From: Rebecca billardiae RCC1528
Taxonomy: Eukaryota > Protista > Haptophyta
NCBI GenBank assembly: GCA_965240325.2
Contig: OZ251238.1
Coordinates: forward strand, 1,488,001 to 1,552,000
DNA: 64,000 nt
Direction of reading: 5' to 3'
Part shown: positions 6,334 through 48,998 of the stretch, piece after piece
Position numbering within the stretch: the first letter of the stretch is position 1
How the letters are laid out: the number at the start of each line of letters is the position of its first letter
The notes under the pieces: generated by a model
Database searches by the model: none
What the model saw: only the letters and a program-made list of their open reading frames with translations
Told to the model about the DNA's origin: nothing
Position numbers and translations under genes: made by a program

Positions 6334-6370
<37 letters not shown>

Positions 6371-6728: not shown

Positions 6729-6772
<44 letters not shown>

Positions 6773-6818
6773 CCGCCGTGCCCGCCGCCGAGCCCGCCGC
6801 CGCCACCGAACCCGCCCA

Positions 6819-6855
<37 letters not shown>

Positions 6856-29538: not shown

Positions 29539-32500
29539 TCAGCTGAAGAAGTACTCGGAGCGGCGCACCTCGTCGAGGTCGAGCGAGCCGCGCGGCGGCG
29601 GCGGCGGCAGCACGTCGGCGAGCTCGGGGTGGCGGCGCAGCACCTCGGCGCGGAGGCCGTCGAGCAGGTCCTGCGAGTGCAGCTCGACGAACTGGTCGCG
29701 CAGGATGTGCGCCATCGGCTCGACCGTGCCGGCGTGCGTCCAGAAGCTATCGTGCACCGCAGCGAACGTAATCCCGTGCGCGTAGCACTGCACCGCGGTC
29801 TGGAGCATGTGCGTCGAGTCGAGCGAGTGGACGAAGTTGGGCGCGAAGGCGGTGGCCTGCTTGCGCGCGTTGACGCGGAAGCGCGGGTCCCACGTGGGAA
29901 CGTTGAGCCGCTGCAGCGGGGTCTTGATCGTCGCGGTGTCCGGCGTGCGGTACGGCTGCGCGACCGGCAGCCCGAGCGGCGTCGTCCAGCGCATCGGCTC
30001 GTTCGTGTGCTGCGGGCGGCGGCGGCGGCGGGCGGGCGGGCGGCACGGTGAGCGGAGCGGGCGGCCAACGGGCCCGCCGCGCGGCAGGCGGCGCAGCCTC
30101 CATCCGCGCCCGCGCGCGACACACAGCAGGGACCCAACATCCGGCGAGGCGCGAAAAAAAGAGGGAAAGGAAAAACACCGACCAGAAAAGGACAGAAAAG
30201 AAAAAGAAAAAGAAAGGAAAAAGAAAAAGAAAAAGAAAAGGCGCAGCACTCACCCGACACACGGTGGAGGCGACCTCCTTGAGCCAGCGCATGCACGCGT
30301 CGGCCTCGGAGAAGACCTCGCCGAGCGAGGCGAGCGTCACCGTCGCCACGTGCACCGAGAGCCGCCGCACCGCTGCCTCGCTCAGCGCGCCGCCCCGCAG
30401 CTCCGGCAGCGCGGCGAGTTTAGACTGCACCTGATCGGCAGCGCCGACGGCTGTGACTCCGTAGACGGAGGTCATGACGGTCTGCTTGACGACCTTGCGC
30501 GAGAGGAGGGCGCGGAGCGGGAGGCGCGCCACGCCACCCTCGCACGCGTCCGCGCCCTCGCCCACGCCCGCCGCCGCGGCGCCGACCGGCCGATCCCCGA
30601 TCTTTTGCAACACGCGCTCGAGCACGCGCGTGTACACGTCACCCGGGCGATCGCCCGGCGTCAGGTTGACTTGTGCGCCGCCCTCCGCGTCGCGGCCGAG
30701 CGCCTGGCGCGCGAGGGGCGGCGTGGGGCGTGGTGGGGGAGGGCGGGCGAGGTGGTGGGGCGCGTGAGCGCATGCGCGCGCGGGACGGCCGGGCGCACAC
30801 GCACACGCGCACGCGCACGCGCACGCGCACACACGCGCGCACACGCACACACACACGCACACGCGCACGCACACGCGCACGCACGCACACACGCACGCGC
30901 ACACGCGCACACGCACGCGCGGCACAGAGGGGCCCCACACAACGGGGCGCGCGGGGAAGGACACGCGCCGCGCGCGCGCTCCGCACCGCGTAGTGCTGCA
31001 GCCCGTTGCACGAGCCATCCATATGCACCGGCAGCGCAGACGGCGCAAGCGGCCGCGCGTGCGCCGGCACGCGGTCGAGACGCGCCAGCTCGACGCAGCA
31101 GGCGAGCGCTTGGAACGGGTTCTCGCGGTCGAGCCACCAGCCGGGGTCCGCGGCGGTGCCCGCCGCGCCGGCGCCGCCGCCCGAGCCCGCCGCCGCCGAC
31201 CCCGCGCCGGCGGCGGGCGCGAGCTCGGCGAGCGGCCGGTCGCCCAGCGGGTCGCGCGCCGCCGCCAGCACGTGCCCCCAGTGCGCGTCCGCCCACGCGG
31301 CGCGCTCGGCGAAAGGCGCCTTGTCGAAGCCGCAGAGGTTGGCGAGGTGGACGCGGAGCCAGAAGAAGCCGCGCTCGCCGAGCGGCCTCGGCTCGGCGAA
31401 GGTGAGCAGCGCGCGCGCGCCGTCCGCGCCCATGTGGTTCAGGTTGGGCGGCAGCGGGTACGCGCGCCCGCGGAAGTCGGCGTTGTGCGGAAAGTACAGC
31501 CGACCCCCGGACTCTGGGCCCCCGGACTCTGGGCCCCCGGACTCTGGGCCCCCGGACTCTGGGCCCCCGGACTGTGGGCGGCCGGAGCGGTCGGCGGGCG
31601 CGGCGGGGTCGGCGCGCGCGGCGCACGCGCTCGCCTGCTCGAGCTTCAGCGCGGCGTCGCACGCGAGCGAGTGCTGCTCGCGGTTCGCCTTGTGCACTCG
31701 GAAGCGCTCCGCGAGCCACGCTCGCCGCACGGCTTCGACGCGCGCCGCCTCCGCCGCCGCCTCCGCGGTGGGCGCGGCGGGCGCGGCGGGGTGCGGGGCG
31801 AGGCGCGCCGCGCGCCGCGCGGCGCGCTCGTCCTTCGCCGCCGCGAACGCCGCCGCCACCTCGGGCGGCGGCGGCGGCAGCGGCTGCGGCACGCGCCTCG
31901 GCAAGCCCGCCACGCCGCCGCCGCGCTCATAAAACAAAGCGCGCTGCGCGGCGAGCACGGCCGTGTCGACGCGCCACGCGGTGAGGCCGAGGACGGAGAG
32001 GGCGAGGTAGAAGCGCGACGGGCCGCCCGGCTGGGCCTGCATCTCCGCCGCCTGGTCCGCGCGGAGCGAGCGCACCACCTCGCGCGGCAGCGAAGCATAG
32101 CCGCCACTTTCGACGCCCGTCCACGGCAGCGGCGGCACGCGCATCGGCAGCAGCCGCATCTTGGTGAATGGCGCGAGCAGCGCGGCGGCGGCGGTGCCGG
32201 GCGCGCCGCCGCCGCACGCCGACGGCGACGCCGCGTCCGCTGAGAGCGCCGCGGTGAAGTCCGCGTGCAGCGCCGGGTGCAGCGTGAGCGTGCCGAGCTG
32301 CCGCGCGCGCCCGCCGCGCCGCCGAGATCCGATCTCGGCGCGAGATCCGATCTCGGCGGCGCGCAAGTCCGGGTGCGCCTCGACGGCGTGGCTCACAATC
32401 GGCAGGCGGAGGAGGCGGGCGTCGTCGTCCGCCACGCCGCGCGCGCGCGCGGCGAGTGCCGAGTGCGGGCCCGGGCCGCCCGCCGCGTCCGCGCCGGCGT

Positions 32501-34352
32501 CGAACCAGCCGACGTCCGCCGCCGCCGCCGCCGCCTCCGCCTCCGCCGCCGCCGCCGCCGCCTCCGCCTCCGCCGCCGCCGCCGCCGCCGCCGCCTCCGC
32601 CTCCGCCGCCGCCTCCGCCTCCGCCGCCTCCGCCGCAGCGCGCGCGGACGCCGCCGCCGCCGCCGACGACGGCGCCGCCGCCGGTGGCACGCGCCACGCC
32701 GCGTGCACGTCCGGCTCGACGGCGCGGCCGAGCGGGTCGCGCGCCGCCGCGTCGCCGCCGTCCGCCAGCCACGCCGCCGCCTCGGCCGCGGCCAGTTCAA
32801 AAGTGCATGCGCCGTGCAGCGCTGAGATGACGAGGGCGGCGCCGGCTTGCGCGACGCCGGGCTGCGAGGCCCACGGGCACGGCGACATCTCGGGCGGCGC
32901 GCCCGCCCCAACCAGCGCCGCGCCGCCGCCGTCGGCACCCGCCGCCGCCGCCCCGCCCGCGCCCGCCGCCTCCGCGCGCCGAGCGTCGCGCCGCCAGCGC
33001 CGGCGCGCGCGCAGCCACACGTCCAAGCGCTTTCGGTCCGACTCCTCCTTGAGCGCGGCCGCGAGCGCGCCGGTGAGCTCGTGCAGCGGCGCCTGCCCCG
33101 CGCCCGCGCGCAGCAGCAGCGAGAGCGTCACGTGCACGCCGAGCGTCGCCGCCACGTCCAGCTCCGTGCAGCCCGCAAGCGCGGCCCACGCGCGCGACTC
33201 GCGAGACGGCCGCGCCTGCTTGCGCGCGGCGGTGAGCGCGCGCCCGCGCGCCGCGCCGCGCGCGCCCGCCGCCGCGTCGGCGGCGGCGGGCGCGGCCCCT
33301 GCGGGCGGCGGCGGCGGCAGCGAGCCGTCCTCGGCGGCCGCGCCCGCGAGCTGCCCCGCCGCCTCCGCCGCCGCCGCCGGGGCCACCAGCCCGCGCTCGG
33401 CGGCGGCCGCGGCCGCGTCGGCGCCCGCCGCCGGTGCCGGGCGGAGGAGGCCGCGCTCGGCGGCCGCGGCCGCGAGCGCGCGGTGGAGCTGGTCGCACCA
33501 GTCCTTGAGGCAGGAGCGCGGCACGAGCGCGCCCACGCGCGAGCCCAGCTTGCGGCGCACCAGCTCGGCGCGCGTCTCGAGCTGCCGCTGCAGCGTCTCC
33601 GCCGCCGCGAGATTTTCATCTCGGAGCTGAGATCGCACGAGATCGTCCCGCACATAGCGGCTGGGCGGCTCGAGCGTCGCGTACGGCGGCACGGCGAGCG
33701 CGCGCGCGTGCGTCGCCGGCCGCGCGGACGCACACGCCGCCGACGCCGCCGTCGCCACGGCCGACGACTCGCGCCGCGCGCCCCTCGCCGCCGCCAGCGA
33801 AGCCAGCTCGCCCTCCAGCGCAGCGAGCCGCTCACGCAGTTCTTCGCCGTGGAGCGAGACGGCCTCGGCCTCGAGGAGGGAGCGCTCGAGCGCGGCGGGG
33901 AGGGGCTGCGAGGCGGCGGCGGCCGCGGCGTGCTGCGCCTCCGCGCTCGGCGCCGCGAGCGCGCCGCCGCGCCGCGCCGCCGGCTGCTGCGGCCGCGCGG
34001 GCGGCGCGGGCGCGCCCGGCGGCAGCAGCGGCTCGAGCCACGGCGAGAGCTCGGCGGGCTCGTGCGCCCAGGCGGAGGTGAGGTCGGGGTCGAGGGGCTC
34101 AAAGTGGAGCAGCGCGTCGTCCTCGTCCAGCGCCGAGCCCACCTCGCCGCGCAGCAGCGCGTCGAAGACGGCGAGCGAGCGCGGCGCCGCCTGCTGCGTG
34201 CTCAGCGCGCGCGCCCACTGCGACGCCGCGCGCGGCGGCGGCGGCGGCGGCGCGGCGGGCGGCGCGGCGCGGCGGGCGGCGGCGCGCAGCAGCGCGCGGC
34301 CGTGCGCGCGGAGCGGCGCGCCGAGCCCCGCGCCCACGCCGCGGCCGTGCAT
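29539..34352 (-). CDS. POLRMT: Nuclear-encoded T3/T7-type single-subunit RNA polymerase (mitochondrial type); introns approx. 30703-30986 and 30011-30252
   Basis: FPHNADFRGRAYP, PVHMDGSCNGLQHYA, RKVVKQTVMTSVYGVT, PNFVHSLD, VHDSFWTH, terminal YFFS; Arg/Ala-rich transit-like N-terminus. Confidence 0.93.
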
Positions 34353-34634
34353 GGCGGTGCGTCGGCGCTGGCAGGCGCAGCGCCACGAGCCTGTTGCCTC
34401 GCGACACGCCCGAGTCGCGAGGTGCAGCAGAAAGGTGGCGCAGCGCGGCACATTATTTGGGCGAGTCCGGTGGATCTGTTTAGGTCTGGAGCTACTTTAC
34501 TCACTTGGTCGTACATTGGTCAAGCGGCGTCCTTGATTCGCTGTTTCGTTCGTCGCTTTCGGTCGCTCGGCGCGCGCGCGGAGATTTCAAAGAAATAGAG
34601 GGGGTAGAACCGAAAGCTCACCTCCCGGACTGAA

Positions 34635-36320
34635 ATGACCGGGCTTCAGAGTCCGGACGGCTTGCCCCAGCTCCGCGCCGCCGCACTTGGCAAAGACTGG
34701 CGTCGTCCGCCCCTGATCCCCGCAGCCATGCTCACCGATGCCGCACGGGCGGAGCTCGTCGCCGTATTCCAGGCGAAGAGCGCCGAGTGGGAGAAGAGGA
34801 AGACGAAGGGGAACGCCAACGGCTTGCCGCAGATCGACCGCGTGCTGGAGCTGAAGCTCATCAAGGTGCGGCACAAGCTCAGCCAGCGGCAGATCGCCCT
34901 CGCGTACAAGCGCTACCTCGATCCGCCCCAGCGTGTGAAGCTGGCGCCGGTGAGCGGCTTCGTCGAGTCGACGCTGAAGCAGCTAGGCGACAGGTCGCTC
35001 ATCGTCAAGCGCGCCGTCGAGTTCTGCCGGACGAGTTCTCATGCGGCGATGTTGATGGGTGATCCCACGCCAGCCCGCTTCGACAAGCTGGCCTCGGCGC
35101 TCGGGGACGAGCTCGAGGAGCGCGTGCGGGCCATGGTCGACGTGATGGCGACTCACCGCGCGAAGTCAACCACGGCGATCGGCAACGTGCGCTCGGCCTT
35201 CCACTCGGAGCTGCGTGAGACACGACAGGCGTTTATCCAGGAGCACGCGGCGCGCGCAGAGGAGGCGATCCGGAGCTTGTCAGCTGTGAACGCTCGGCCC
35301 ATGTTGCACGTCGCGCTCCTGGACGAGCTGGACGAGGCGCTCTTCGCGGCCACGTGCGAAAAGCTCGCCGCCCACCCACCCGTCCAGGTGCCACCGACCT
35401 GCTCGCCGGATGTGAAGGACCTCCGCGCCCAGCTCCTGTACTACCTCACCGGCTGGCTCATGCGCAAGGTGCAGGCTGCCGCTTGCCACGGTACCAAGGC
35501 GCTCCTGGAAGCGGGGCCCTTTTGGCTCGCGTGGCTCAAGGCGAACGGGCTCGCGAGCAGCGATGTCGTGTCCCTCTGGGATCTGCCGTCGGTGCGTACG
35601 CTCAGGCGCAACGTGCACGACTCTGCCCTCTACCTCCCACGCAAGGAGCTATTCATGCTCGTGTGGAGGATTGAGGAGCACGTCGTCGCCGTCCTCACTC
35701 GGGACCACATCGCGCTCGTCAGGGGCGACATCATGCTCGAGGCGTCCAAGCTCATCCTGGCTAGTGCGGAGTGCGCAGCGCTCTTCGCTGCCACGCTGCC
35801 CGACCCCAAGCCTGCCGAGGCGGAGCAGCGGGCCCTCTTCGAGTTCCTCGTGGACAAGTACATGCGCGTGCGCGGCCCGAACTTTGCACGCACGGCTCTC
35901 GATCACATGTTCACGTCGCTCACCGTGGAGAGCCAGCGGGCCAACCTGCGCACCAAGCTCGCTACGGTCGCGGCGAAGTCGCCCGGCGCCCAGCTCAGCG
36001 TGCCGGCGCCCGAGGCGATGCTGACGCATCGTGAGTCGCTTGCCAAGGCGATTGCGCTTGGAGACGTCGACGAGGCTGATGGCGAAGGGCAGTCAGCAGA
36101 GGAGGTGAAGGCTGATGAGCGCATGGTGGACTCGTTCTTCGCAGACATCGAGAGCGAGCAGCAGCGCTGCCTGCTCGACGACGAGGTCAATGACGGTGCT
36201 GATGTCGAGCACCTCGACTTGATCACGAAGGGCGTGCAGGCGTGCTTCGGCAATGCAGCCAGCGCGGGCGGCAGTGCAGACCCCTTTGCTGTGAGCGGCG
36301 ATCATGCTGACGACGAGTGA
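34635..36320 (+). CDS. Transposon ORF2 (561 aa, intronless), resembling the C-terminal domain of P/THAP9-type transposases
   Basis: Clean ORF starting 16 bp inside the left TIR; motifs LYYLTGWLMRKV, LYLPRKELF..V..IE, FLVDKYMRVR; acidic tail. Confidence 0.7.
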   Translation: MTGLQSPDGLPQLRAAALGKDWRRPPLIPAAMLTDAARAELVAVFQAKSAEWEKRKTKGNANGLPQIDRVLELKLIKVRHKLSQRQIALAYKRYLDPPQRVKLAPVSGFVESTLKQLGDRSLIVKRAVEFCRTSSHAAMLMGDPTPARFDKLASALGDELEERVRAMVDVMATHRAKSTTAIGNVRSAFHSELRETRQAFIQEHAARAEEAIRSLSAVNARPMLHVALLDELDEALFAATCEKLAAHPPVQVPPTCSPDVKDLRAQLLYYLTGWLMRKVQAAACHGTKALLEAGPFWLAWLKANGLASSDVVSLWDLPSVRTLRRNVHDSALYLPRKELFMLVWRIEEHVVAVLTRDHIALVRGDIMLEASKLILASAECAALFAATLPDPKPAEAEQRALFEFLVDKYMRVRGPNFARTALDHMFTSLTVESQRANLRTKLATVAAKSPGAQLSVPAPEAMLTHRESLAKAIALGDVDEADGEGQSAEEVKADERMVDSFFADIESEQQRCLLDDEVNDGADVEHLDLITKGVQACFGNAASAGGSADPFAVSGDHADDE

Positions 36321-36537
36321 CTCCGACTACGATGTATCATCAATGATTGGTTAGCGCGTCATCGATATCGTCACGTGTCATCATATCAGTCACAGATATT
36401 ATACATCATAGGTGAGCAGCGCGCCACGGCGCCGGGCACTGTGTGACTGGGCCTGACACTGTGAGTCCCGTCATGCTAGTAGCAGCGCTCGCCGCCGGAT
36501 TACTGTAATTTACGTACTTATTCTAATATATATATAT

Positions 36538-37100
36538 TGATTGGCGCTTCGCGCGTGTCGTGCGGTCCTTACTGTGTTTCGTGGGGCGAAGGGGCGTCCC
36601 CCTTGCTGATGAGTCAATGGCTGGTTTCAGGTTGGCTGATGTTTTTAGTCTGGTGAAAGCTGATGGAAGTGGCATCGAAGATTTTGGAATCTTCGTGTGC
36701 CTGCTTCCCTCGGTCGGAATGCTCTCGGAATTCCGTTGATTGCCTTCGGGTCATTGCACGAAAGCTTCCTGTGATGATCGGGACGTCTCCTCGAAATGAA
36801 AAGAAAGTTCTGATGACTGCATGGTAGTCTCTGGTCCAGTTCAGGGTACCTTCCCAAGTGGTGAAGAATCCCTGGACCCTTGGATGTGTAGTCCGAAGAC
36901 CTCATGTGTGTGCCGATGCTCCTTATCTTTGGAGTAGTAACTTGCATGAACAATGGCTGCTGTTGGCCTTGCTCTTGAATGGTGAAACCGATTGAATTGC
37001 ATGATGAAAGTCTGTAGCTTGGCGGCTGAAATTGCTCAGCGCCTTGGAATTAAAGTCTCGAGCTGGGGAATGGCGCCGATGGCTGCCTTGGACTTTGACA
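36538..37100 (-). repeat. 3' LTR of copia-2
   Basis: Direct repeat of 43767-44329; no difference found by eye. Confidence 0.95.
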
Positions 37101-37107
37101 CGCCCCC

Positions 37108-40100
37108 TCAATTCGAAACTGGTGTAACCATGATGTCTCGAAATTTGGTGAACTTGTCCTTGGGTAGCGCCTTGGTCAGACAATCGGCGATGTTTTCCGA
37201 GGTGTGCACCTTGGTGATGTTGACTGCACCGAGGTCGACACAATCTCGAATAAAATGGTGTCGTACGTCGATGTGCTTGGTGCGCTTATGATGAATGCTG
37301 TTCTTTGAGAGATCAATCGCCCCCTTGTTGTCCTCGTGGATCACAATGGGAGTCTTTTGACTGTTGAGGATATAGCTGATGACGTCGCGTAGGTAAACTG
37401 CCTCTTTGGCTCCTTCCGCGAGTGCGACATATTCGGCCTCACAGGATGAAAGGGTTGTGATTGACTGCTTGAAGGTGCGCCACGATACTGGGCCGCCAGC
37501 ATGGAAGTAGATATAGCTTCCGGTCGAGCGGCGATCTTTTGTATCGTTGGCCCAGTCCGAGTCCACAAACATCTCCGTTCGTGGCTGAGTAGTAGCCGTT
37601 GATGTGAAAGTGATGCCGGAATTCTTTGTCCCGGCCAAGTACCTGAGCACTCGCTTGGCACCTTTAAGGTCGTTCGAGCTTGGGCTTGCCATGTGCCTTG
37701 CCAACATATTGACTGCATAGCTGATGTCGGGTCGGCAGGTGTTCATGATGAATAGTAGCGCTCCGACAATTGCTCGGTAGGTCTTTGATTCCTCCGGCGA
37801 GCACGATGATGAATCGTCTGTCTCGACTGCTGTCGGATGCTCTGTTGCCGATCTGCACGGGTTGTCGACGGGCGTAATGTCGCTCATGTCGTGCTTCTTG
37901 AGGAGATCGGTGATGTACTGTGACATGGAGATAGTCGTCGACTTGGGCCCCTGGGCGATACTCATGCCTAGGAAAGTCGTTGCTGGTCCCAGATCCCGGA
38001 GGGTGAATTCTTTTCGAATTTCTCCGATAATCGAGCTGGGTCTTGCGCTGTCGGGGGAGCTGCTCAGAATAAGCAGGTCGTCCACGTACACTGCGATGAC
38101 GTCGATGATGTCTCCTGAGGTGCGGACGAAGATGCACTCCGACTGTGTGAGTTTCTTGAATCCTTTCTCTCGCAGTTTCTGGCTGAGGCGGATGTGCCAT
38201 CGTCTGCCGCTCTGCTTAAATCCTGGAAGGGCCATATCCCAGTCAGCCGCGACCACGTGTCCCTCGGGTGGCTTGAGGGCACACGGGTACAGCGGGGGTA
38301 GCGTAGTGTAGATCTTCAGGCCGTCCTCCAATGGGGCTTGGAGGTACGCCGTACTCACGTCTGCAGAGTGGATGATCCAAGGTCTTTCTGGTGTTCGTAG
38401 CTCCGTCGTCAGTGCCAATAGGAGGCGTACGTTCTCGTACCGGATAGTAGGCGAGAACACCTCGTCGTAATTGACTCCTTGAATCTGGCGGAAGCCTTGA
38501 CCAACCAATCTTGCCTTGTACCGTTCGATGGTACCATCTGGATTGGCTTTGACCTTGAAGACCAGCTTCGATGGGATAATTGCTTTCCCTTTGGGAACAA
38601 TGACGGGCGTGAATGTGCCCAGCCTGTCGTGGGCCTCGTATTCTTCCATGATAGCCCTTGTCCAATCGGATGCTTGCTTGCTCTCCATCGCTTCCTTGAA
38701 CGATGTAGGTACCGGGATATCTGATGCGAGCTGCGCGAGCTGCGCGCGCGCGCGCGCGCGCCGCGTCGGCGGGAAGTATGACTTGCCAGTCATGTTGCGA
38801 GTCCGCTGTGGGCGGCGATCGGCGGAGGGAGGAGGCTGCTTTGGCTGCGGTGGCGTATTGCTCTGTGATGGTCCGCCTCCAGCTCCGGGGCCGTCTCCAT
38901 CACCGTCGTCGCCGTTGCCATCATCTCCCTTCTCGTCGTCGTCGGGTTTGTCCCTGTCGTCCTCGTCGTCATCGTCGTCTGATTTCTCGTCCGGCGATGG
39001 TGGATCGTCTCCTCCGCGCTCGGAGCCGCTGTCGGCGTCACTGCTGCTGCTGGCAAACTCTTCGTCGCCCTCCTCGTTGGTGTTGCTGTCACGGGTCTTA
39101 CCAGCATCTGCACCTTGAGGAGGTCGCCGAGCGCTCCACGCCAGCAGGGGGTCCCGAATTTCGCGGATCTCCTTGAAATGCGTAGAGATTCGATCCAAAA
39201 TGACTTGCTCGTTGAACTTGACGTGCCGAGTGATGACGATTTTCCCGTCGTCGGCACTCAAAACGATGTATCCGTGCGATCGCTTGATGGTGCCTCGCTC
39301 GAAGATACCGTCAAATCCGTATCCCAGTAAGATGCCCTCCCGCGCGCGCGGGAGTAGCTTGTTCTGCTTGTTGATCGACTGTACGAGGTAGATGCAGGGC
39401 GAGCCCCAAACTCTCAGCTTTTGCAGGAAGGGCCCGGGCGAGGTGCCAAACATCAGCTCGTGCGGTGAAACCAGCTTGCCATCGCTGGTAGGATGCTTGC
39501 TCATCAGGTTGCGTTGCGCGGCAGCGCACTTGGCTGCCCAATACCACCATTTGTGGTGTACGCCTGAGAGGTACAGCATTGTCCTGGCGTCATTCATGAT
39601 GACTCCGAGGCCACGTTCGGCGACGCCGTTCAGCTGCTGCGTGTGGGGGGGCGACATGTAGTTGCATAGCATGTCGTACCTGCGAAGGACTCGGTTCCAA
39701 TTCTTTGAGTGTAACTCTCGGCCTCCGTCGAGGTGAATGGTGCATCCGGCGATGCCCTTGTTCTGCATGGTGGCGGATAGAGAGTTGGCTCCCATCTCGC
39801 TGGCCATGAGGTCGAGCTTCTCCGGCGCTTCAGCCTTGTTTTGCATGTCGTAGAAGCGCATGTATCCGGAAAAATCATCGATGAATAGAGTTCCCCACCT
39901 TGGAGTCTTTGCGGGCAGCCCGTTGATGGGCCCGATGACATCGTTGTGGAGCATCTCGAGCGGTCGAGTTGTTCTCTCACGTGTGCCCGGGAACGGCTTG
40001 GCCTTGAACTTGGCAACGTCGGAGGGCTGGTACGTGCAGGGCGATGCCTCCGACATCTTGTCGTTCGCGCGGTAGGTTGCGCGTACACGCTTGATATCGG

Positions 40101-43100
40101 CATATCCTAGTCTGGATTGCCAGAGCGTGATCTTCCGCCCGTTCTTGATCGGGTCGACGTCTGGTGGCACGTCGTCCGCGGTGGCCGGCATGGCTGTCTC
40201 GGCCTTGGGTACGACTGTCTTGAATCCGACGGTGTTGTCGGGGCGCAAATGAACCCTCTTGGGGCCGATGCGGATGTATGGTCGTTCGTCGAACACCACA
40301 GCCATTCCGACCGCGGCGAACGCGTTGACTGAAAAAAGAGTAGTATCGAGATCTTCGACTCCGACGACGTTTTCCAGGCACACCGGCACGGTTGTGTCTG
40401 AGTCGGCGTCAAGTAAGTATACGTACATGTCGCCTGCCTTGGATGCGTGTAGCTCAATGTCGCGCTTGGCGACCTTGACAGACATGCTGATCGGGTGAGC
40501 ATTGTGTAGCAGGCCGAGGTTGATATCGACAAATGATTGGGACGCGCCCGAGTCCAGATACGCGTATTGCGTCGGCTCGAGATCTGCGTCATCGGGTTCC
40601 GGGTCGATGTCCTCGTCTTGCACCATCTGGGCCCGCGGCCTCCCCGCCCGCTTTTGGGGCGGAGGTACTTTGATGAACTTGCCGTCGCGCCCGCCGGGCT
40701 TGGCGGGCGGCCTGAAGTTGCCCTGCCTTGGTGCACCGGGCGGCCTGGGTGGCCGCAAGTCTGGATGTAGCTTCCAGCACCGCTCTGCGGTGTGGTTGCG
40801 TAGCCCGCAGTGCGAGCACGTGACGGCTGGTTGTCGGCGGTCCGCCTCCTCAGTATTGAGAGCGTGCGCGGGACCGCCCCGCTTGGGGTCACGTTGCGTT
40901 GCCTGTCGTCCCTTGGGCGACTGAGTCCAACGCCTGTATGCGTCCTCGATCTGGGCGGTGAGCTGTTCGGTCTGCGCCACGCATTGCTGGGGCGACATTG
41001 AACCGTAAATAGAGATGACGGTCGAGTAGACCTCTGGGTGCTCGTGCATCCCGTTGTACAACTTGAAAACGAGGAGTGTGGCGTCGTCTAGCTCTCGATA
41101 GCGTGATGCGCGTACCATCTCCACCGTTTGCTTGATCATCTCGGGGCCGCTCACCGGGGTCGGTCGGTCCGGGTAGAGCTTCTTGAACTCAGCTCGGAGC
41201 TCCGACATGGTCGATACGTTCAGCTCGTGCTCGAAGATTTCGAGCAGAGTATGTAAATTCAGGAAATTCTCATTCGGGTTCACGATGTGCCGTTTCGACT
41301 CGAGGTACGAAAAGAGACTCGGCAGCATCATGTCCTTGATACGCTTGAAAAGTACTTCCACCGATCGCTCGTAGACGATCGTCATCTGCATGATGGTGGT
41401 GTCAGCATCCATGTTTGCGAATGCGGTTGCGTACGGTTCCCGAATAGCATTTTCGGCTGTCCACACGGCGGCCTCGGCCAACGCGTATCCGGAGAGCCTG
41501 GCCTCGACGAGGGTGACCATGGACGACGTAGTGTCGGTCGCTCTTCCCTTGAAGGAAGCCTTGACCTCGGTGACTGCGTCCTTGATCGCTCCGTGGATAG
41601 CCATTTTCGATTTGATTGTGAAGAAATTCAGCTTGTAGCTTCCGACGCCGGGCTGGCTTGTCTGCACAGCCATCATTGCATGTGCGTCGGGCAAGTAGGT
41701 GATGCAAGCTTCGCCTCCATTTCTGCGCGTTCGTGGTGACGCGTCGAGCGAGCTTGTCTCAATGTGGTCCTCTGCTGTGGCATAGCTGCCCATTTCCGAC
41801 GATGTAGAAGACTCGTCCCCATCGCTGCTCTGCTGTGCGCTGTTGTCGTCACCAGTCGTGGCAGGTGGGTAGTTTGTGACACCACCAGGTGGGCCGTCGT
41901 CAGCCGGCGAGTGTCCCTCGCTCGCTTCAGAAGTCAGCCCATAGAACTCTTTGTGCAGGAAGCATGCGACACCTGGCTGTAGGAGTGCGTCATTACAATG
42001 GAACATGAGATCGAACTTGCTTTGGTGAAGCTCGTCCCTCTCCCGCACATAGTCTCCAACTGTGTAGTTGTGACCTTGCCGCTCTGCGGCTGCTGCGATG
42101 AAGCCTCCCGAGTAGATAGTGCATCGTTTGGATGGCCGCCAAGGGCAAATATCATCGAGGCTGGCGCCTGCGTCGTTCACGACGCTCAGGCTGCGGCGAT
42201 CAGCCGCTGCGACGGGTCCGTCCTGCCGGTGGAAGTGAATGCCATCATCATCGATGTCAATCCCGTCGTTCATCGCTGCAAACTGGATAATCTGCTCGTC
42301 ACATTCGAGCTGATGCTGAACTTGGATGGCGTCTGCGCATCGGTAGCTGCAGACTCTGCCCATCCCACAGATGATGCATTCGAGGGTGCAATGCATCGAT
42401 GTGCACGACTGATTGTCGCATGGCTGGCGCGACTTCGGATCATCGTCGTCAATCTCACTCCACTGGCTGCAGTAGATGCCGTTGCCCATGTTCTTGCGCG
42501 TCGGGATCTCCGGGATGATGCAATCGAAGGTCTCGCCTACACCATACCAACTGCTGACAGCCAGGAGGGGGTAAGTGCACAGGTATGAGGACATGCGATG
42601 CTTGTCGCGCGCAGCGTGTTCCCATGCTGCCTTGTTGCAGCACAAGATGGATTGGGGCCGGTCACTCGAGTCGCTGCACATACCTCCAATGGTGAAGATG
42701 TCGTCTCCGATGTCCATCGGATCCTGGTAGACGAGTCCGTTGATGTCGATGGCCGCATCCTTGAGCACGTTGAGGACATCATTGAGGCTCAACGCGTCCG
42801 GCGGCGGGGTCGAGCCGCGCGCGAGGTCGTCAAGCTGCGGCGCGAACTCCTCGAACGGCTCCGACCGCTCATCGCCAGGGATCTGGCCCGGGTCGAAGGG
42901 GTAGTGGCTGTGCGGCTCCTTGAAGTCGGTCACGACGCTGATGGTCGGGAGGTCGCCCGCCATCGCGTCCGCCTCCGGCGCTGCGACGCTGCTGCCTCCA
43001 TGCTGGTCGTGTCCAGTCGCAGTCGGCGACGCCGAGTCCGGGGATTCCGTCTGTGTCGTAGCGTCGCGATGCAGCGACTGCGACGACGGCGAGTCGTCCT

Positions 43101-43767
43101 TCTGCGAGGACGGGGGCACTCGCCATTGCTCAGGGAGCACGACGGGCTGCTTGTAGTCCCAGCCCAGCGTGCCGGAGGGCCGCGGGCCGTTTGGGTACTT
43201 GTCGTGCGCCGACGATCGCTCCTGCGCGCTGGGGATCGTCATGGGTTCAGTTGCGCGCGCGCCGGTGCGCGGCGCGGCGCGCTCGGCCTCGCTGTGTTGC
43301 GAGGGATGGTATCGGTGGCCCCGCGAGTGGGGCGGGTGCCAGTGCGCATGCGCGGAGTTGGATGGCCTTGTGCTCTCCGCGAACCACGTCCCGTCGTAGG
43401 GTACGAGGTTGTCGTCGCTCCGCCGGTGGTGCTTGTACTCGGTCGGTGCGTGATGCCGGCCGCCGCCGTTGCCTTGGCGACTGGGGCCTTGCTCGCCACG
43501 CGGGTAGTGTCCGTCGTGGCGGTCGCGGTTCTCGATGGAGCTGCGACTGTCCTCGTAGAAGGTACGCGGGCTCCCGCCCTGGTCGTACCATCGCGAGGAT
43601 GGGAACTCGATGTCTTCCTTGCGGCCGGTGTCGTTCCGTGCCGATCCGGCGTTGTCGCCGAAGTCGATGTCGAGGAGCATGGGGCTCCCGTGGTGGCGGA
43701 GCCGTTCGTTGCGGGTCCGCTTGCGCTGATTGTAGGATCGGACGACGTTGTGCACCCGTGAGCTCAT
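37108..43767 (-). CDS. copia-2 Gag-Pol polyprotein (2219 aa) with a long N-terminal extension
   Basis: CSHCGLRNHTAERC knuckle; YLDSGAS protease; HNDVIGP/HLDGGRE/LNGVAER integrase; RYKARLV, YVDD RT; VDSDWA, SSCEAEY, KHIDVRHH RNase H. Confidence 0.95.
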   Translation of the reverse strand: MSSRVHNVVRSYNQRKRTRNERLRHHGSPMLLDIDFGDNAGSARNDTGRKEDIEFPSSRWYDQGGSPRTFYEDSRSSIENRDRHDGHYPRGEQGPSRQGNGGGRHHAPTEYKHHRRSDDNLVPYDGTWFAESTRPSNSAHAHWHPPHSRGHRYHPSQHSEAERAAPRTGARATEPMTIPSAQERSSAHDKYPNGPRPSGTLGWDYKQPVVLPEQWRVPPSSQKDDSPSSQSLHRDATTQTESPDSASPTATGHDQHGGSSVAAPEADAMAGDLPTISVVTDFKEPHSHYPFDPGQIPGDERSEPFEEFAPQLDDLARGSTPPPDALSLNDVLNVLKDAAIDINGLVYQDPMDIGDDIFTIGGMCSDSSDRPQSILCCNKAAWEHAARDKHRMSSYLCTYPLLAVSSWYGVGETFDCIIPEIPTRKNMGNGIYCSQWSEIDDDDPKSRQPCDNQSCTSMHCTLECIICGMGRVCSYRCADAIQVQHQLECDEQIIQFAAMNDGIDIDDDGIHFHRQDGPVAAADRRSLSVVNDAGASLDDICPWRPSKRCTIYSGGFIAAAAERQGHNYTVGDYVRERDELHQSKFDLMFHCNDALLQPGVACFLHKEFYGLTSEASEGHSPADDGPPGGVTNYPPATTGDDNSAQQSSDGDESSTSSEMGSYATAEDHIETSSLDASPRTRRNGGEACITYLPDAHAMMAVQTSQPGVGSYKLNFFTIKSKMAIHGAIKDAVTEVKASFKGRATDTTSSMVTLVEARLSGYALAEAAVWTAENAIREPYATAFANMDADTTIMQMTIVYERSVEVLFKRIKDMMLPSLFSYLESKRHIVNPNENFLNLHTLLEIFEHELNVSTMSELRAEFKKLYPDRPTPVSGPEMIKQTVEMVRASRYRELDDATLLVFKLYNGMHEHPEVYSTVISIYGSMSPQQCVAQTEQLTAQIEDAYRRWTQSPKGRQATQRDPKRGGPAHALNTEEADRRQPAVTCSHCGLRNHTAERCWKLHPDLRPPRPPGAPRQGNFRPPAKPGGRDGKFIKVPPPQKRAGRPRAQMVQDEDIDPEPDDADLEPTQYAYLDSGASQSFVDINLGLLHNAHPISMSVKVAKRDIELHASKAGDMYVYLLDADSDTTVPVCLENVVGVEDLDTTLFSVNAFAAVGMAVVFDERPYIRIGPKRVHLRPDNTVGFKTVVPKAETAMPATADDVPPDVDPIKNGRKITLWQSRLGYADIKRVRATYRANDKMSEASPCTYQPSDVAKFKAKPFPGTRERTTRPLEMLHNDVIGPINGLPAKTPRWGTLFIDDFSGYMRFYDMQNKAEAPEKLDLMASEMGANSLSATMQNKGIAGCTIHLDGGRELHSKNWNRVLRRYDMLCNYMSPPHTQQLNGVAERGLGVIMNDARTMLYLSGVHHKWWYWAAKCAAAQRNLMSKHPTSDGKLVSPHELMFGTSPGPFLQKLRVWGSPCIYLVQSINKQNKLLPRAREGILLGYGFDGIFERGTIKRSHGYIVLSADDGKIVITRHVKFNEQVILDRISTHFKEIREIRDPLLAWSARRPPQGADAGKTRDSNTNEEGDEEFASSSSDADSGSERGGDDPPSPDEKSDDDDDEDDRDKPDDDEKGDDGNGDDGDGDGPGAGGGPSQSNTPPQPKQPPPSADRRPQRTRNMTGKSYFPPTRRARARAQLAQLASDIPVPTSFKEAMESKQASDWTRAIMEEYEAHDRLGTFTPVIVPKGKAIIPSKLVFKVKANPDGTIERYKARLVGQGFRQIQGVNYDEVFSPTIRYENVRLLLALTTELRTPERPWIIHSADVSTAYLQAPLEDGLKIYTTLPPLYPCALKPPEGHVVAADWDMALPGFKQSGRRWHIRLSQKLREKGFKKLTQSECIFVRTSGDIIDVIAVYVDDLLILSSSPDSARPSSIIGEIRKEFTLRDLGPATTFLGMSIAQGPKSTTISMSQYITDLLKKHDMSDITPVDNPCRSATEHPTAVETDDSSSCSPEESKTYRAIVGALLFIMNTCRPDISYAVNMLARHMASPSSNDLKGAKRVLRYLAGTKNSGITFTSTATTQPRTEMFVDSDWANDTKDRRSTGSYIYFHAGGPVSWRTFKQSITTLSSCEAEYVALAEGAKEAVYLRDVISYILNSQKTPIVIHEDNKGAIDLSKNSIHHKRTKHIDVRHHFIRDCVDLGAVNITKVHTSENIADCLTKALPKDKFTKFRDIMVTPVSN

Positions 43768-44329
43768 GATTGGCGCTTCGCGCGTGTCGTGCGGTCCTTA
43801 CTGTGTTTCGTGGGGCGAAGGGGCGTCCCCCTTGCTGATGAGTCAATGGCTGGTTTCAGGTTGGCTGATGTTTTTAGTCTGGTGAAAGCTGATGGAAGTG
43901 GCATCGAAGATTTTGGAATCTTCGTGTGCCTGCTTCCCTCGGTCGGAATGCTCTCGGAATTCCGTTGATTGCCTTCGGGTCATTGCACGAAAGCTTCCTG
44001 TGATGATCGGGACGTCTCCTCGAAATGAAAAGAAAGTTCTGATGACTGCATGGTAGTCTCTGGTCCAGTTCAGGGTACCTTCCCAAGTGGTGAAGAATCC
44101 CTGGACCCTTGGATGTGTAGTCCGAAGACCTCATGTGTGTGCCGATGCTCCTTATCTTTGGAGTAGTAACTTGCATGAACAATGGCTGCTGTTGGCCTTG
44201 CTCTTGAATGGTGAAACCGATTGAATTGCATGATGAAAGTCTGTAGCTTGGCGGCTGAAATTGCTCAGCGCCTTGGAATTAAAGTCTCGAGCTGGGGAAT
44301 GGCGCCGATGGCTGCCTTGGACTTTGACA
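43767..44329 (-). repeat. 5' LTR of copia-2
   Basis: Direct repeat of 36538-37100. Confidence 0.95.
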
Positions 44330-44364
44330 TATATAGCAGATTATTACGCGACTATACGTATCCT

Positions 44365-44654
44365 CATCCTGTCGGCGCGCTGTTGCATCGGCGCCCAGTC
44401 GGCGAGTTCGGAGGACGACGTTTTGTGGCGGACGACGGTGGGGCGAGGACGACGGGCGCTGGCGCGCCGCGAGGCGGCCGCAGCCCTCATCCATCCAGGC
44501 CTCGCAGGCGCCGGACCGGGGGGGCTGAACGAATTTTTGATATTTTTCCGACGGCGCTACCGCCATCGGCGACGGCTTCATGGGCGGTGACAGTTCGGGC
44601 GGGCGTCAATCTCGCTTGCCTGAGCTGTGTGCGTCTCTTATTCTTAGTAAACTG
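44365..44654 (-). repeat. Inverted partial copy of the left end of the 10463-11686 element
   Basis: Diverged reverse complement of 10463-10780, ending TAGTAAACTG|TA. Confidence 0.85.
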
Positions 44655-44841
44655 TAATAATATATCGCGATATTAATATATAATGTATATATTAAAATAG
44701 CCGCGTTTCAATTATATATATATTAAATATAACGTACTGACGGGCGTGTAGACTATAGATGATGACATATACATGTATGCAGATGATGACGATGATGCGC
44801 CATGATGGTCGACGGTATGCGTGCACAACATGCTATCTTAA

Positions 44842-47800
44842 CTAACCTGACCGGTCGTCATCCGACCGCAGCCGCTTGCGCGACGCCGACGACGACTTGC
44901 TGCGCCGTTCCTTCGCCAGCTCACGGTGGCGCTGCGTGAGCCCGCACACGTCGCCGTGGCGGCCGTCGTTGCAGTCGCCCTCGTCGACGTAGCGCACGTT
45001 GAGACCCCTGATGTCCTCCGTCAGGTCGGGCGCAGCTCGCATCATCGCCACCATGCCCGCCATGTACGTCGCGCGCATCCCTTGCGCCACCGTGGGGTGG
45101 CCGCCCTGCACCTTGCGGCGCACCTGCCCAAAGTGGTGCTCGAGGCAATCAGTGCTCAGCCGGCGCTGCACGATGGTGGCGGTCGGGTGACGCGTGAGCG
45201 TGACGAGGCTGACGCCGACGATGCCCAGGATGGTCCATCGCATGTCCTCCCACGTCTCCTTCGCGAAGAAGTACGTCCCCGCGATCTCGGCCTCGGTCGC
45301 GCCGGCGCTCGCCAGGTCCTCGCGCCAGGTGGTGAAGTAGTCGAGGATCTCGAGCAGCTCCTTCACCGGTTTCAGGTTGTCCCTGTTGATGTTGCCGACG
45401 TGCTTCTTCGGGTTGCCGTGATCCACGCGGCCGTTGCAGAGGTCCATGAAGCGGTCGAGGTGCACGCACAGCTCCTTCAGCGCCCCCAGGCTCTCCGCGT
45501 CAGCTGGGTGCCGAGCCTGATACTCGCCGATCATCTCCACCGTTTTGGCCGAGAAGATCTGCACAGCGTAAGGCACGCGCTGCTTGGTGTACGCGTTCGG
45601 CTCGAGATGGTACTTGGAGAGGTGGTAGTAGATGGTCATCGCCGCATTGCCGAGCGTGTCCCGGCCCTCCAGCGTGTCCTTCACCTTCTTGATGAGGTCG
45701 AGCCCGAGCTCCGCCCACAGCTGCCTGTCCGTCTCCTCCGGGCCGTGGGGCTTGTGCAGCTTCCGCGCGCTCGCGAGCGCGTTGCGCAGCTTCTTGATGA
45801 GGTGGGGGAAGTCGGAGATGATGAAGATCGGCCTTTCCGTGCCGAAGACGGGGTGCGGCATGGCCACCTTGAAGTCGAGGTGCTTCTTGAGGAGCGCGTC
45901 CAGGCCGAGGTTGACGGCGAGATCCAGCTTGGCAATCACGTCGGCCACCGACAAGGTTGCCTGTGCGTGCATGAAGCCTCTGTTCTCTCCGGCACCGTCG
46001 CACACGACAGCGTCGACGTTGAGGCCGACGTAGTAGAGAGCGCGTATGACCTCATGCACGCGCGCGATGATGTCCGCCGGCGTCGATCTGCCCACCGGCC
46101 ACTGCGCCACGGGGAGCCGGATGCGCTGCTCGCCGAGTCCGTTGTAGTAGAAGACGAGCACTCTCTCCGCCACGTCCGCCTCCGACACGCCAGCTGTTGA
46201 AGGCCCGGTCTGCTGCTCGGCGAGCGCCGACTCGAACTGGCGAGCGACCACGTCGAGGTCGCGCGAGCCGGCCACAAACCCGTCGACGCGGTGCGTGTGC
46301 ACGTTGTACTTCACGCCGCGCTTGCAGTAGTACTCGTCGAAGCCGAGCGCGCCGTCCGTGTCGTGGTCGCCCTCGACCAGCTTGAAGGCAAGAGGCAGGT
46401 CCTTCAGGTGCGCTAACATGATGCCGTCGTCCACGGTGGAGACGTTGATGAAGCTCGAGAGAGCGCGCGCGCCCGGCATGAAGAAGAGCGTGGACGTGCG
46501 CATGTACGCCGACTGCCCCATGCGCGCCATCAGCTCCGCCATGAAGCGCATCGTCTCCGGGTGGTATCGGAACGAGCGCTTCGACTTGCCGTCTGCGCGC
46601 TTGGCCGCGTTCGTCAGCATGTCATCGAATATGTGGAACGCGACGCTGCCCTCCGGGAAGAGCTGGGCGAAGAGCATCTTGGCCTGCTTCGCACTGGCCT
46701 GCGCGGTAGCATCCCCGCCGGCTGCCGCGCCGCCACGCCCATCGCCGGTGGACGACGAGCCGGCGGCGCGGCCATGCTCGCGCCCTGCGCCGCCGTCGCG
46801 GCTCGGGCCCGCTCGCCCGCCACCACGCTCGCCGCCAGCGGACTCGTCGTCGCCCACATCGTCGCCGTTAAAGACAATGCCGAAGGTATCGGCGACGTCG
46901 AGCACAAACTGCTTCATGTCCTGGGCGCTCTTGTCATCCAGCTCCACGCCGTGCTCGGACATCACCTTGGCTGCACGAAGCCGCGCGTCGCGGAAGCCGT
47001 TCACGACCGGCAGCGCGAGCGAGGGAGACTCGGCGATGAGCGCCGCGGGGATGCCGTGACCGGGAAGGTGGTGAGGACGAGGCGGCGTGGCGGGTGGCGC
47101 GCCCTCGCCCGCGGCGTGCGCGCGTGCCGAGGGTAGAGCAGTCGCAGCTGCCGCGCCGATGGCGCTCGCCCCCGCCAGGCCCGCCGCGGCGACATCAGCA
47201 GCTGCCGCCGTTGGCGCCGGTGCGCTGCGCAGTGCCGCGCCCACGGAGCGCGCGCGCTCGTTGCGGGCCGACCACTGCGCGCGCAGCGCACGCTGCGCGC
47301 CCTGGCACGAGGCGCATGCGTGCTGCGCGTCGGGCATGGCGAGGCTGCAATTCGGGCTGCGGAAGTGGCCGTCCGTACACATGTAGGCGACCACGTCCGG
47401 CCGGAGCTGCGTCCCTTGCTCGTTCGCCGAGCGACCGTGCACGAGAACGGCACCGGTGGGGTTGGCCCCAAGCAGCAGCTGATGCGCTCGGCTCCCAACG
47501 CACGGGAGCGGCGGCTCGAGCTGCCAGCGCGCAAACGAGCCCAGGTCGCGCGACGATCTCAACTCCATGTACTTGTCGTAGCCGTCATCGTCAAGGCTGC
47601 GGACACCTCTGCACAGCGCCATGCCGTCTGCAGCCGCCCGTGTGAAGCAGGCGAGCGCCCGGCTCACGTCGTCATCGGTGCGCATGGGCATGCCGGACAG
47701 GCAGACGCCGTCGAGCGAGATGAAGCTCGTGAGCGCGTCCACGCCATCCACAGCCTCGCGCACGAAGAGGATCGAGTCGGAGAGGATCGAGTCGCGCAGC

Positions 47801-48705
47801 ACCGCCTCGCCGCCGCTAGACTTGAACGCCCGTAGGAAGTCGCCACCGGCTTCTGTCTGCAGCCCATCAGCCGCGCAGCGCTGCGCCGCCAGTCCGAGCA
47901 GAGACGACGGCTGGCGCTGCTCAGCCGCCGGCGCGGCCGCAGATGGAGGCGGTGCCTCCGGAGCAGGGGGCGGCGGGGCGGGAGGCGCGAGTTGGTGCCC
48001 GACGCCGAGCTTTCGTTCGAGAAGCGCATACGCGCTCACGAGCCCGCCGCCCGCGTCTCGCCGGTCATTCACGCGCAACGGCTTGTGTGCGAGGATGAGG
48101 CCGAGTGTTCTCGCCCGAGGCTCGAGCTCCGTGCCGTGCGCGCCGTCCGACGAATCGAGCGACACGCCCACCGTGGGCGCGACAGACCGCAGCACCTCGG
48201 CGAACTCGTCGCGTGCGAGCAATGCAGCGAGCGCGCGCTCCTCGACAGCCCCATCCTCGTAGAGGGGCGCCAACAACTGCTCGAGCTGGAAAACAGGAGC
48301 CGGTGGGCATAGATAGCTCGGCTGCCCGGCCGGCTTCACGTAGTACACCATCCGTCCGTCTACGACACCGGGGACATGCCGCGCTCGGTCTTTGATGATG
48401 TCGTGGGGCGAGCCGTTGCCCGTCAGGTGCTCCGCCAGCGCCTTTGCCATGTTGATATCCCCAACCCACCAGTTCGCCGCCAACCTGTAGTGCGCACGAA
48501 ACGAGGGCGGTTCGGGGGCGCCAAAACGGGTGAGATTCGTGTCCCTCAAGGTTCGAGCGGTGGGTAAGCACACTGCCCCGCTGGCTCCATACTTTAGGGA
48601 CACGAAATTACGCGCAGTATCTCTGTGTTGGGCAGTCGCGCGCCACGCGGGCAAGTTTGGGGCTCGACGCTCAGGCCCGGTCGCGGGCGCACCTGGAGAC
48701 ACCAT
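44842..48705 (-). CDS. P-element/THAP9-family DDE transposase (~1290 aa, intronless; first in-frame ATG at 48705)
   Basis: RYHPETMRF...AY...MPGARAL; GFDEYY..GVKY....VDGFV; VVCDGAGENR; SDFPHLIKKLRN (D-x2-H); KQRVPYAVQIFS; LSTDCLEHHFGQVR...GGHPT; upstream RSPNC-x8-CASC. Confidence 0.88.
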   Translation of the reverse strand: MVSPGAPATGPERRAPNLPAWRATAQHRDTARNFVSLKYGASGAVCLPTARTLRDTNLTRFGAPEPPSFRAHYRLAANWWVGDINMAKALAEHLTGNGSPHDIIKDRARHVPGVVDGRMVYYVKPAGQPSYLCPPAPVFQLEQLLAPLYEDGAVEERALAALLARDEFAEVLRSVAPTVGVSLDSSDGAHGTELEPRARTLGLILAHKPLRVNDRRDAGGGLVSAYALLERKLGVGHQLAPPAPPPPAPEAPPPSAAAPAAEQRQPSSLLGLAAQRCAADGLQTEAGGDFLRAFKSSGGEAVLRDSILSDSILFVREAVDGVDALTSFISLDGVCLSGMPMRTDDDVSRALACFTRAAADGMALCRGVRSLDDDGYDKYMELRSSRDLGSFARWQLEPPLPCVGSRAHQLLLGANPTGAVLVHGRSANEQGTQLRPDVVAYMCTDGHFRSPNCSLAMPDAQHACASCQGAQRALRAQWSARNERARSVGAALRSAPAPTAAAADVAAAGLAGASAIGAAAATALPSARAHAAGEGAPPATPPRPHHLPGHGIPAALIAESPSLALPVVNGFRDARLRAAKVMSEHGVELDDKSAQDMKQFVLDVADTFGIVFNGDDVGDDESAGGERGGGRAGPSRDGGAGREHGRAAGSSSTGDGRGGAAAGGDATAQASAKQAKMLFAQLFPEGSVAFHIFDDMLTNAAKRADGKSKRSFRYHPETMRFMAELMARMGQSAYMRTSTLFFMPGARALSSFINVSTVDDGIMLAHLKDLPLAFKLVEGDHDTDGALGFDEYYCKRGVKYNVHTHRVDGFVAGSRDLDVVARQFESALAEQQTGPSTAGVSEADVAERVLVFYYNGLGEQRIRLPVAQWPVGRSTPADIIARVHEVIRALYYVGLNVDAVVCDGAGENRGFMHAQATLSVADVIAKLDLAVNLGLDALLKKHLDFKVAMPHPVFGTERPIFIISDFPHLIKKLRNALASARKLHKPHGPEETDRQLWAELGLDLIKKVKDTLEGRDTLGNAAMTIYYHLSKYHLEPNAYTKQRVPYAVQIFSAKTVEMIGEYQARHPADAESLGALKELCVHLDRFMDLCNGRVDHGNPKKHVGNINRDNLKPVKELLEILDYFTTWREDLASAGATEAEIAGTYFFAKETWEDMRWTILGIVGVSLVTLTRHPTATIVQRRLSTDCLEHHFGQVRRKVQGGHPTVAQGMRATYMAGMVAMMRAAPDLTEDIRGLNVRYVDEGDCNDGRHGDVCGLTQRHRELAKERRSKSSSASRKRLRSDDDRSG

Positions 48706-48998
48706 CGCCGGCGCCGCTCGCGTCGTCGGTTTGGTCGGTGGAGTTTCTGCGTGGTCGCATGGCTTCAAGCCCCGGGCTGCACGTCGGGCGTGCACTGCAC
48801 GAGCCGAGAGTCAGCGCGGCTGCGACGAGGTGCAGGGCGAGGAGCAACCAGGGCATCTCCGCGCCTGAGGGCGTGACGAAGCTGAAGCCCGGTGTTCCGG
48901 AGCGAGCAGTCTGAAACCATATTAATCGGGAGAGCTTTCGGTTCTACCCCCTTCGCGCCAAACAGGTGCGGCCGGACTGCGCAGCATGCGTCTCCGCC

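Follow-up and report, generated by a model that had tools for sequence, protein, structure and literature searches.

A P-type DNA transposon of the haptophyte Rebecca billardiae with a predicted P/THAP9 C-terminal domain on a second, convergent gene

This study describes a DNA transposon in the haptophyte Rebecca billardiae RCC1528, found on contig OZ251238.1 of assembly GCA_965240325.2 within a window of 64 kb (positions 1,488,001 to 1,552,000 of the forward strand). The window is the whole stretch of DNA that was analysed, and all positions given below are counted from its first letter. The element spans 34599-48952 (14,354 bp) and, by its catalytic core and its terminal inverted repeats (TIRs), belongs to the P superfamily of cut-and-paste transposons. 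P elements and THAP9 are the textbook single-protein transposases. The transposase described here is probably encoded in two pieces, with a catalytic core specified by one open reading frame (ORF1) and the C-terminal domain (CTD) by another (ORF2), which approaches it from the opposite end of the element.

The element and its two genes

The features of the element that bear on its transposase are listed here in the order of their positions, with amino acids abbreviated as aa:
34599-34622, plus strand: left TIR, the outer 21 nt of which are perfect
34635-36320, plus strand: ORF2, 561 aa, with a first ATG at 34635 and a second at 34728 (M32)
34638-34649, plus strand: left copy of the subterminal 12-nt motif ACCGGGCTTCAG, a candidate binding site, 18 nt inside the perfect TIR and overlapping the first ORF2 ATG
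34716-34940, plus strand: ORF2 aa 28-102, homeodomain-like three-helix domain and putative DNA-binding module, from a structure search with the full-length model
35400-35936, plus strand: ORF2 aa 256-434, predicted core of a P/THAP9-type CTD, from the motif test and structure searches
35979-36317, plus strand: ORF2 aa 449-561, acidic tail with predicted disorder (predicted local distance difference test, pLDDT, below 50)
44842-48795, minus strand: ORF1, a P/THAP9-type transposase with neither CTD nor THAP domain, 1317 aa from a GTG, first ATG at 48705
45082-45159, minus strand: ORF1 aa 1213-1238, C-terminal half of the RNase H domain with the catalytic Glu E1219, from a weak PF21789 match
45415-45624, minus strand: ORF1 aa 1058-1127, candidate GTP-binding insertion domain (GBD) of the TNP-like type, from a weak PF21788 match and the alignment to 6p5a_A
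45970-46365, minus strand: ORF1 aa 811-942, N-terminal half of the TNP-like RNase H domain, PF21787 at 1.9e-7 and 31.9 bits against a cut-off of 24.6
48882-48893, minus strand: right copy of the subterminal motif ACCGGGCTTCAG, 38 nt inside the perfect TIR
48929-48952, minus strand: right TIR, from the inverted-repeat comparison

The two TIRs match over 24 nt with one mismatch, and the 21-nt sequence of their perfect outer part occurs at just these two sites in the window, with 0 expected by chance. The same holds for the 12-mer ACCGGGCTTCAG, which is present in exactly two copies in inverted orientation (0 expected), located at unequal distances from the TIRs. The element is also distinct in its base composition, with a GC content of 53-70% in a window that ranges from 62 to 84% per 2-kb bin. 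When inverted repeats were sought more widely, as possible ends of a larger element, only GC-rich low-complexity noise came up.

The three TNP-like Pfam matches of ORF1 (RNaseH_N, GBD and RNaseH_C) are collinear, the latter two being weak. PF21788 reaches an E-value of 0.027 and 15.3 bits, which is under its cut-off of 24.8, but the match lies between the second Asp and the Glu as expected, and phmmer aligns the same segment to residues 331-418 of 6p5a_A. In the phmmer search of ORF1 against the PDB, the Drosophila P transposase was the sole match; in this alignment, ISDFPHLIKKLRN is paired with FSDTPHLIKLVRN, and DCLEHHFGQVR with DIVEHFFGSMR, the catalytic Glu motif. ORF1 stops 98 aa after this Glu with a basic tail rich in Lys, Arg and Ser, which looks like a nuclear-localisation signal. 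The Pfam search gave no match to THAP (PF05485) in ORF1 at E<=1, and when the element was scanned with a profile of the ORF2-family core, nothing like a CTD appeared in ORF1 or in the remaining frames. The N-terminal 530 aa of ORF1 were not recognised by a language-model feature search. A first reading of the DNA, made from the sequence only, had proposed perfect 21-bp TIRs, two intact tail-to-tail ORFs and, in the minus-strand ORF, P/THAP9-type catalytic motifs followed by an early end after DCLEHHF and no THAP domain, all of which is borne out by these results.

ORF2, its predicted C-terminal domain and its conserved partner

ORF2 has no Pfam match at E<=5. An exhaustive search with phmmer through 1.84 billion representatives gave its family, which comprises a copy of 99% identity and 21 remote homologues with E-values down to 5e-22. 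A word-indexed homology search with ORF2, the ORF1 core and the family profile found only the 99% copy for relatives, and a scan of bacterial and archaeal genomes found no relative, as expected. Sequence matches in the PDB to apolipoprotein A-I and to designed helical proteins were discarded as compositional only.

The family alignment is conserved in an N-terminal region and in a core, where three strong blocks stand out in the order LLYYIxGWL, LP...GxLxYASxxLFxxVWxVExxYxxLLT and LLxxYxRMRGRDFxR, also written with their variants as YY(I/L)xGW, LP...GxLxY(A/P)SxxLFxxVWxVE and YxRMRGxDF. Several members read YYI(A/S/T)GY(L/M) in the first block, which is near the motif YIAGY of region 1 in P and THAP9 proteins. 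The motifs that the first reading had named in ORF2 were found at the positions claimed for them, and it is in these blocks that conservation across the protein family, which is a real one, is highest. The onset of family conservation, and of the confidently modelled part, coincides with M32 (34728), which is a better fit as a start than the first ATG.

The relationship of the core to the CTD of known transposases was examined with consensus strings from a 2026 preprint, which gives them for three conserved regions of the CTD, both in TNP and in THAP9 homologues (10.64898/2026.08.31.747927). Consensus regions 1-3 of both proteins were scored with hmmsearch against a profile of the ORF2 core (A3), together with 2000 shuffles of each. 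They are collinear on the profile, with region 1 at positions 11-21, region 2 at 62-91 and region 3 at 145-162, which are the three blocks. The CTD features tested, namely (L/E)YIAGY..., GGLxxPSxxL...E and a basic helix containing (I/M)R, were thus all recovered in order on the family profile. The real score was reached by 0, 0 and 112 of the 2000 shuffles for regions 1, 2 and 3 of TNP and by 9, 0 and 1 for those of THAP9, so that five of the six regions beat at least 99.5% of the shuffles. There was no significant match to PF22824 (THAP9_C) or PF12596, either for ORF2 at E<=5 or among the family members, the best of which (one of 18) has a sub-threshold PF22824 match with an E-value of 0.14, located at region 2 and with the same offset from the start of the domain.

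Structure searches point to the same domain. The model of the ORF2 core has a pLDDT of 89.6 and a predicted template-modelling score (pTM) of 0.85. In a shape search of the ESM Atlas, its top four rows were all THAP9/P-transposase clusters, with template-modelling (TM) scores by query of 0.56-0.67 and 136-148 residues aligned at a root-mean-square deviation of 3.0-3.8 Å, followed by unrelated rows at 0.47 or less. In a structural search of 48,161 PDB chains, which is independent of Foldseek, the core ranked 6p5a_B 617-734 first, with a Z-score of 10.3 over 118 of 118 residues and the next match at 6.6; the model of full-length ORF2 had the same top match (Z 9.9, over model residues 256-428). 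This segment is the CTD in the strand-transfer complex of the Drosophila P transposase, which forms a separate chain in the PDB entry. The modelled core of ORF2 is thus very likely homologous to the P/THAP9 CTD, as judged from the structure searches and the motif test together, and the proposal that ORF1 is without the C-terminal region while the convergent ORF2 carries it has gained support from the shuffled motifs and both searches.

Other parts of ORF2 were compared in the same way. For residues 28-102, at least 12 homeodomain entries give superpositions with Z-scores of 5.2-6.2 and 53-60 aligned residues, which is most of each target; among them are MATalpha2, engrailed, HOXB13, CRX and DUX4. 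Eight members of the family show conservation over this region. However, small three-helix folds match readily, and the likeness is therefore a lead to a DNA-binding module and no proof of one. Residues 105-250 are modelled as long helices.

The convergent arrangement of an ORF2-like gene on the plus strand and an ORF1-like gene on the minus strand recurs in four distant metagenomic loci with 24-46% identity, three of which (L008, L010 and L011) come from a pattern scan of metagenome contigs:
L004, from a JGI metagenome, plus strand: ORF2 homologue P0002; a convergent ORF1 homologue with 33% identity, an E-value of 3e-18 and the Glu motif TDKVEHHF lies 48 nt downstream
L008, plus strand: ORF2 homologue; convergent ORF1 homologue with 33% identity over 285 aa
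L010, plus strand: ORF2 homologue; convergent ORF1 homologue with 46% identity
L011, plus strand: ORF2 homologue; convergent ORF1 homologue with 40% identity

The transposase in each of these loci ends 62-101 aa past the Glu with a basic tail and is CTD-less, and among the loci examined no ORF2 family member was fused to a transposase or stood in an obvious host-gene context. The convergent co-occurrence of both genes, proposed beforehand as a check, therefore holds in distant relatives. As to selection, this copy and that in another sample differ at four positions (three nonsynonymous, one synonymous), which is too few for a selection test, and ratios of nonsynonymous to synonymous substitution (dN/dS) of 0.6-0.7 between metagenomic copy pairs are unreliable because of frameshifts. 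Only one run contains the sequence (about 3x depth, library type unknown), and the contigs of this run miss the body of ORF1.

Two side observations concern the family members. The ORF2-like genes of L009 and L011 have 8 and 3 in-frame stops in a single frame and are probably decayed or frameshifted. The contig L014, which contains family member P0018, has a Helitron-like pair upstream at 2768-7169, consisting of a DUF6570 gene and a PIF1 helicase with a SAP domain.

A proposed transposase in two pieces and its alternatives

The arrangement of the two genes suggests how such an element could work. ORF1 would provide the catalytic core, which has an RNase H fold with a putative insertion of the GTP-binding type, and ORF2 would supply the all-helical CTD, which in the Drosophila P transposase and in THAP9 is the last part of the polypeptide. 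From its N-terminus, ORF2 is predicted to consist of the homeodomain-like module, the long helical region, the CTD and the acidic disordered tail. We infer that ORF2 joins an ORF1 dimer on the ends of the element, where the subterminal ACCGGGCTTCAG sites may be recognised by the helix-turn-helix module in the N-terminal part of ORF2, as they would be by THAP in animal P elements, and that the expression of ORF2 would gate or tune transposition. A CTD on a separate polypeptide is structurally plausible, since the CTD of the Drosophila enzyme is deposited as a PDB chain of its own, and in the solved complex it touches both transposon and target DNA (PMC7776569). A more far-reaching proposal is that P-superfamily transposases can act as obligate two-subunit enzymes, in which a CTD-less catalytic subunit works with a CTD protein that reads the subterminal sites in place of THAP. 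We regard this as possible but put it at somewhat below even chances. If it were true, the CTD of animal P and THAP9 proteins could be an ancient gene fusion, or the present lineage a fission, and the element would be a natural split system for learning the function of the CTD.

Several observations weigh against a transposase that needs both genes, or against an element that moves by it. CTD-deleted DmTNP and hTHAP9 are reported to retain excision and integration (10.64898/2026.08.31.747927), so that a partner carrying the CTD may be non-essential. By sequence alone, neither ORF2 nor its family profile reached significance against Pfam and the PDB. Foldseek, run with the full and core models against the PDB and the Swiss-Prot part of the AlphaFold database (AFDB), returned poor helical matches with no P or THAP9 protein among them. 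The structural comparison with the P-family CTD, which the sequence-only reading had named as a way to check its proposal, has accordingly a divided outcome, negative with Foldseek and positive with the PDB-wide search and the ESM Atlas; as Foldseek missed the relationship, the alignment-based and Atlas shape searches were needed to detect it. The first ATG of ORF2 lies just 36 nt from the end of the element, so that there is hardly space for a promoter. In addition, five further loci are too short to show a partner gene, and L012 looks decayed. Finally, no target-site duplication (TSD) was found at the ends of this single copy, where an 8-bp duplication is the usual feature of the P superfamily: the 8 nt outside are AGAAATAG and TCGCGCCA, and no shifted register gives one. 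The window holds one copy of the element, and the same 9-nt left flank is present in another sample (a Logan contig). Taken together, the missing TSD, the single copy and the shared left flank leave recent mobility unsupported.

The activity of the truncated enzymes is also the starting point of the main alternative, in which ORF2 would be a regulator that the element can do without, acting as an inhibitor or as a tuner of integration, and ORF1 is competent alone while the CTD protein restrains or redirects it. In THAP9, truncation of the CTD is reported to favour integration (10.64898/2026.08.31.747927), and in Drosophila it is by splicing the C-terminal third in or out that either transposase or repressor is made; this third, which includes the CTD, is what distinguishes the 66-kDa repressor from the 87-kDa transposase (PMC7776569). 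The Drosophila switch operates through retention of the IVS3 intron within one gene, whereas in the present element it would correspond to the expression of a second gene. However, the pair is kept across elements of only 24-46% identity, which argues for strong selection on both genes. The contacts of the CTD with transposon and target DNA in the solved complex also speak against a purely regulatory role, as does the older literature summarised in the same review, according to which only the full 87-kDa protein catalyses transposition (PMC7776569). We consider a dispensable regulator unlikely, although it is the best placed of the alternatives.

The points on mobility would fit an immobile relic or a co-domesticated pair, in which the two genes serve the host and the TIRs are leftovers. 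Further observations in its favour are the depth of about 3x in one run, which is like that of unique sequence, and the location of the element, some 150 bp upstream of the longest ORF in a predicted gene for a phage-type RNA polymerase. Against a relic stand the perfect 21-nt TIRs, which are paired with subterminal motifs, and the occurrence of relatives in many unrelated metagenomes on short, repeat-like contigs, some of them frameshifted, which is the behaviour of a transposon family; a relic or host pair is very improbable. That ORF2 was captured from the host and is unrelated to P transposases, or that it is an ORF arisen by chance in GC-rich DNA with a coincidental motif match, is hardly credible and already contradicted: the missing Pfam match, the empty Foldseek result and a weak SGT1/ecdysoneless pointer from the language-model feature search (low recognition, rejected as an identity for want of Pfam or structural support) stand against a probability under 1e-6, by our own base-composition estimate, of 561 codons arising by chance at about 65-69% GC, against 21 homologues with conserved linkage to TNP-like genes, and against two structure searches and a shuffle-controlled motif test that lead to the P/THAP9 CTD.

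Within the P superfamily, the element shows a TNP-like RNase H domain with DDE residues (PF21787, with a weak collinear PF21789) and TIRs, but it departs from the usual pattern in four features, as it has no CTD within the transposase, no THAP domain, more than a single gene and, at this copy, no 8-bp duplication. It shares with Drosophila P and THAP9 an RNase H core, which here is probably interrupted by an insertion domain, and the collinear order of the TNP-like Pfam domains, as well as an all-helical CTD that is predicted to agree with theirs in its fold and in its three conserved regions. Short TIRs and inner sites unequally spaced from the two ends are likewise shared; the spacing of the 12-mers recalls that of the binding sites in P elements, which is distinct at the two ends (PMC7776569). 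In contrast to these systems, a second, convergent gene encodes the predicted CTD here in fusion with a homeodomain-like N-terminus, ORF1 lacks THAP and has an N-terminal region of about 700 aa without domain assignment, and the host is an alga-like protist and not an animal. THAP domains are restricted to animals (PMC7776569).

No description of a two-gene P element was found in the full-text literature, a scope outside which Repbase and Dfam lie. The element would add to the short list of eukaryotic two-gene cut-and-paste transposons (Harbinger, RAG-like), from which it would be distinct in that the second gene encodes a part split off from the transposase itself. PIF/Harbinger elements have two genes, which encode a DDE transposase and a Myb/SANT-like DNA-binding protein. 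By analogy, both systems would pair a catalytic subunit with a second protein that has a small helical domain of DNA-binding type and may recruit the enzyme to subterminal sites. However, the transposase superfamilies are unrelated, and the Harbinger partner is no detached piece of a transposase fold. The RAG1-like/RAG2-like elements (ProtoRAG) resemble the present element in their convergent catalytic and accessory genes within TIRs (PMC7204232). RAG2 consists of kelch and PHD domains unrelated to any part of RAG1, whereas the core of ORF2 is very likely homologous to a domain inside the transposase of its relatives. The P/THAP9 CTD is described as functionally uncharacterised, with a fold found only in THAP9 homologues (10.64898/2026.08.31.747927), and a lineage with a CTD on a gene of its own beside a CTD-less catalytic gene would offer a direct experimental handle on it. 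In addition, the finding documents P-type elements without THAP in marine or freshwater protists.

Nested insertions and surroundings

The spacer between the two genes is enlarged by two insertions:
36538-44329, minus strand: nested Ty1/copia retrotransposon with long terminal repeats (LTRs), not part of the P-type element, identified by its RVT_2 match, LTRs and target duplication
44365-44657, strand not given: dispersed repeat of about 290 bp, probably a nested fragment, with a second copy at 10514-10780

The LTRs of the copia element (36538-37100 and 43767-44329) are 563 bp long each and 100% identical, and they are flanked by a target duplication, TATAT, at 36533-36537 and 44330-44334. Its coding region matches RVT_2 at 6.7e-49 in Pfam, and a single uninterrupted ORF of 2219 aa fills the entire internal region. 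Since the ATG of this ORF shares a base with the end of the 5' LTR, there is no separate primer-binding stretch. A copia-free allele is present in another sample, on a Logan contig of 2,039 bp (L001) that runs from 34590 through ORF2 and the spacer directly into 44330-44389, and a loose end in the mapped sequencing data agrees with this allele. The absence of the insertion from another sample shows that it is very recent.

The two copies of the dispersed repeat are 82% identical, and in run X1 the depth of its contig is 13 to 40 times as high as in the unique sequence next to it; elsewhere, copies of the unit reach further to the left. Without the copia element and this repeat, the P-type element measures about 6.26 kb, in agreement with the roughly 6.3 kb that had been estimated for it.

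The left neighbour on the minus strand (30639-34451) is predicted to be a phage-type single-subunit RNA polymerase gene, judged from its translated motif HMDGSCNGLQHYA; the start of its longest ORF is the one about 150 bp upstream of which the element lies. On the other side, a possibly divergent gene starts near 48987. Three Logan contigs (L001-L003), which stem from three runs of one sample, all start at 34590, 9 nt outside the left TIR, and this common start may be an assembly-graph branch caused by a repeat or a polymorphism boundary.

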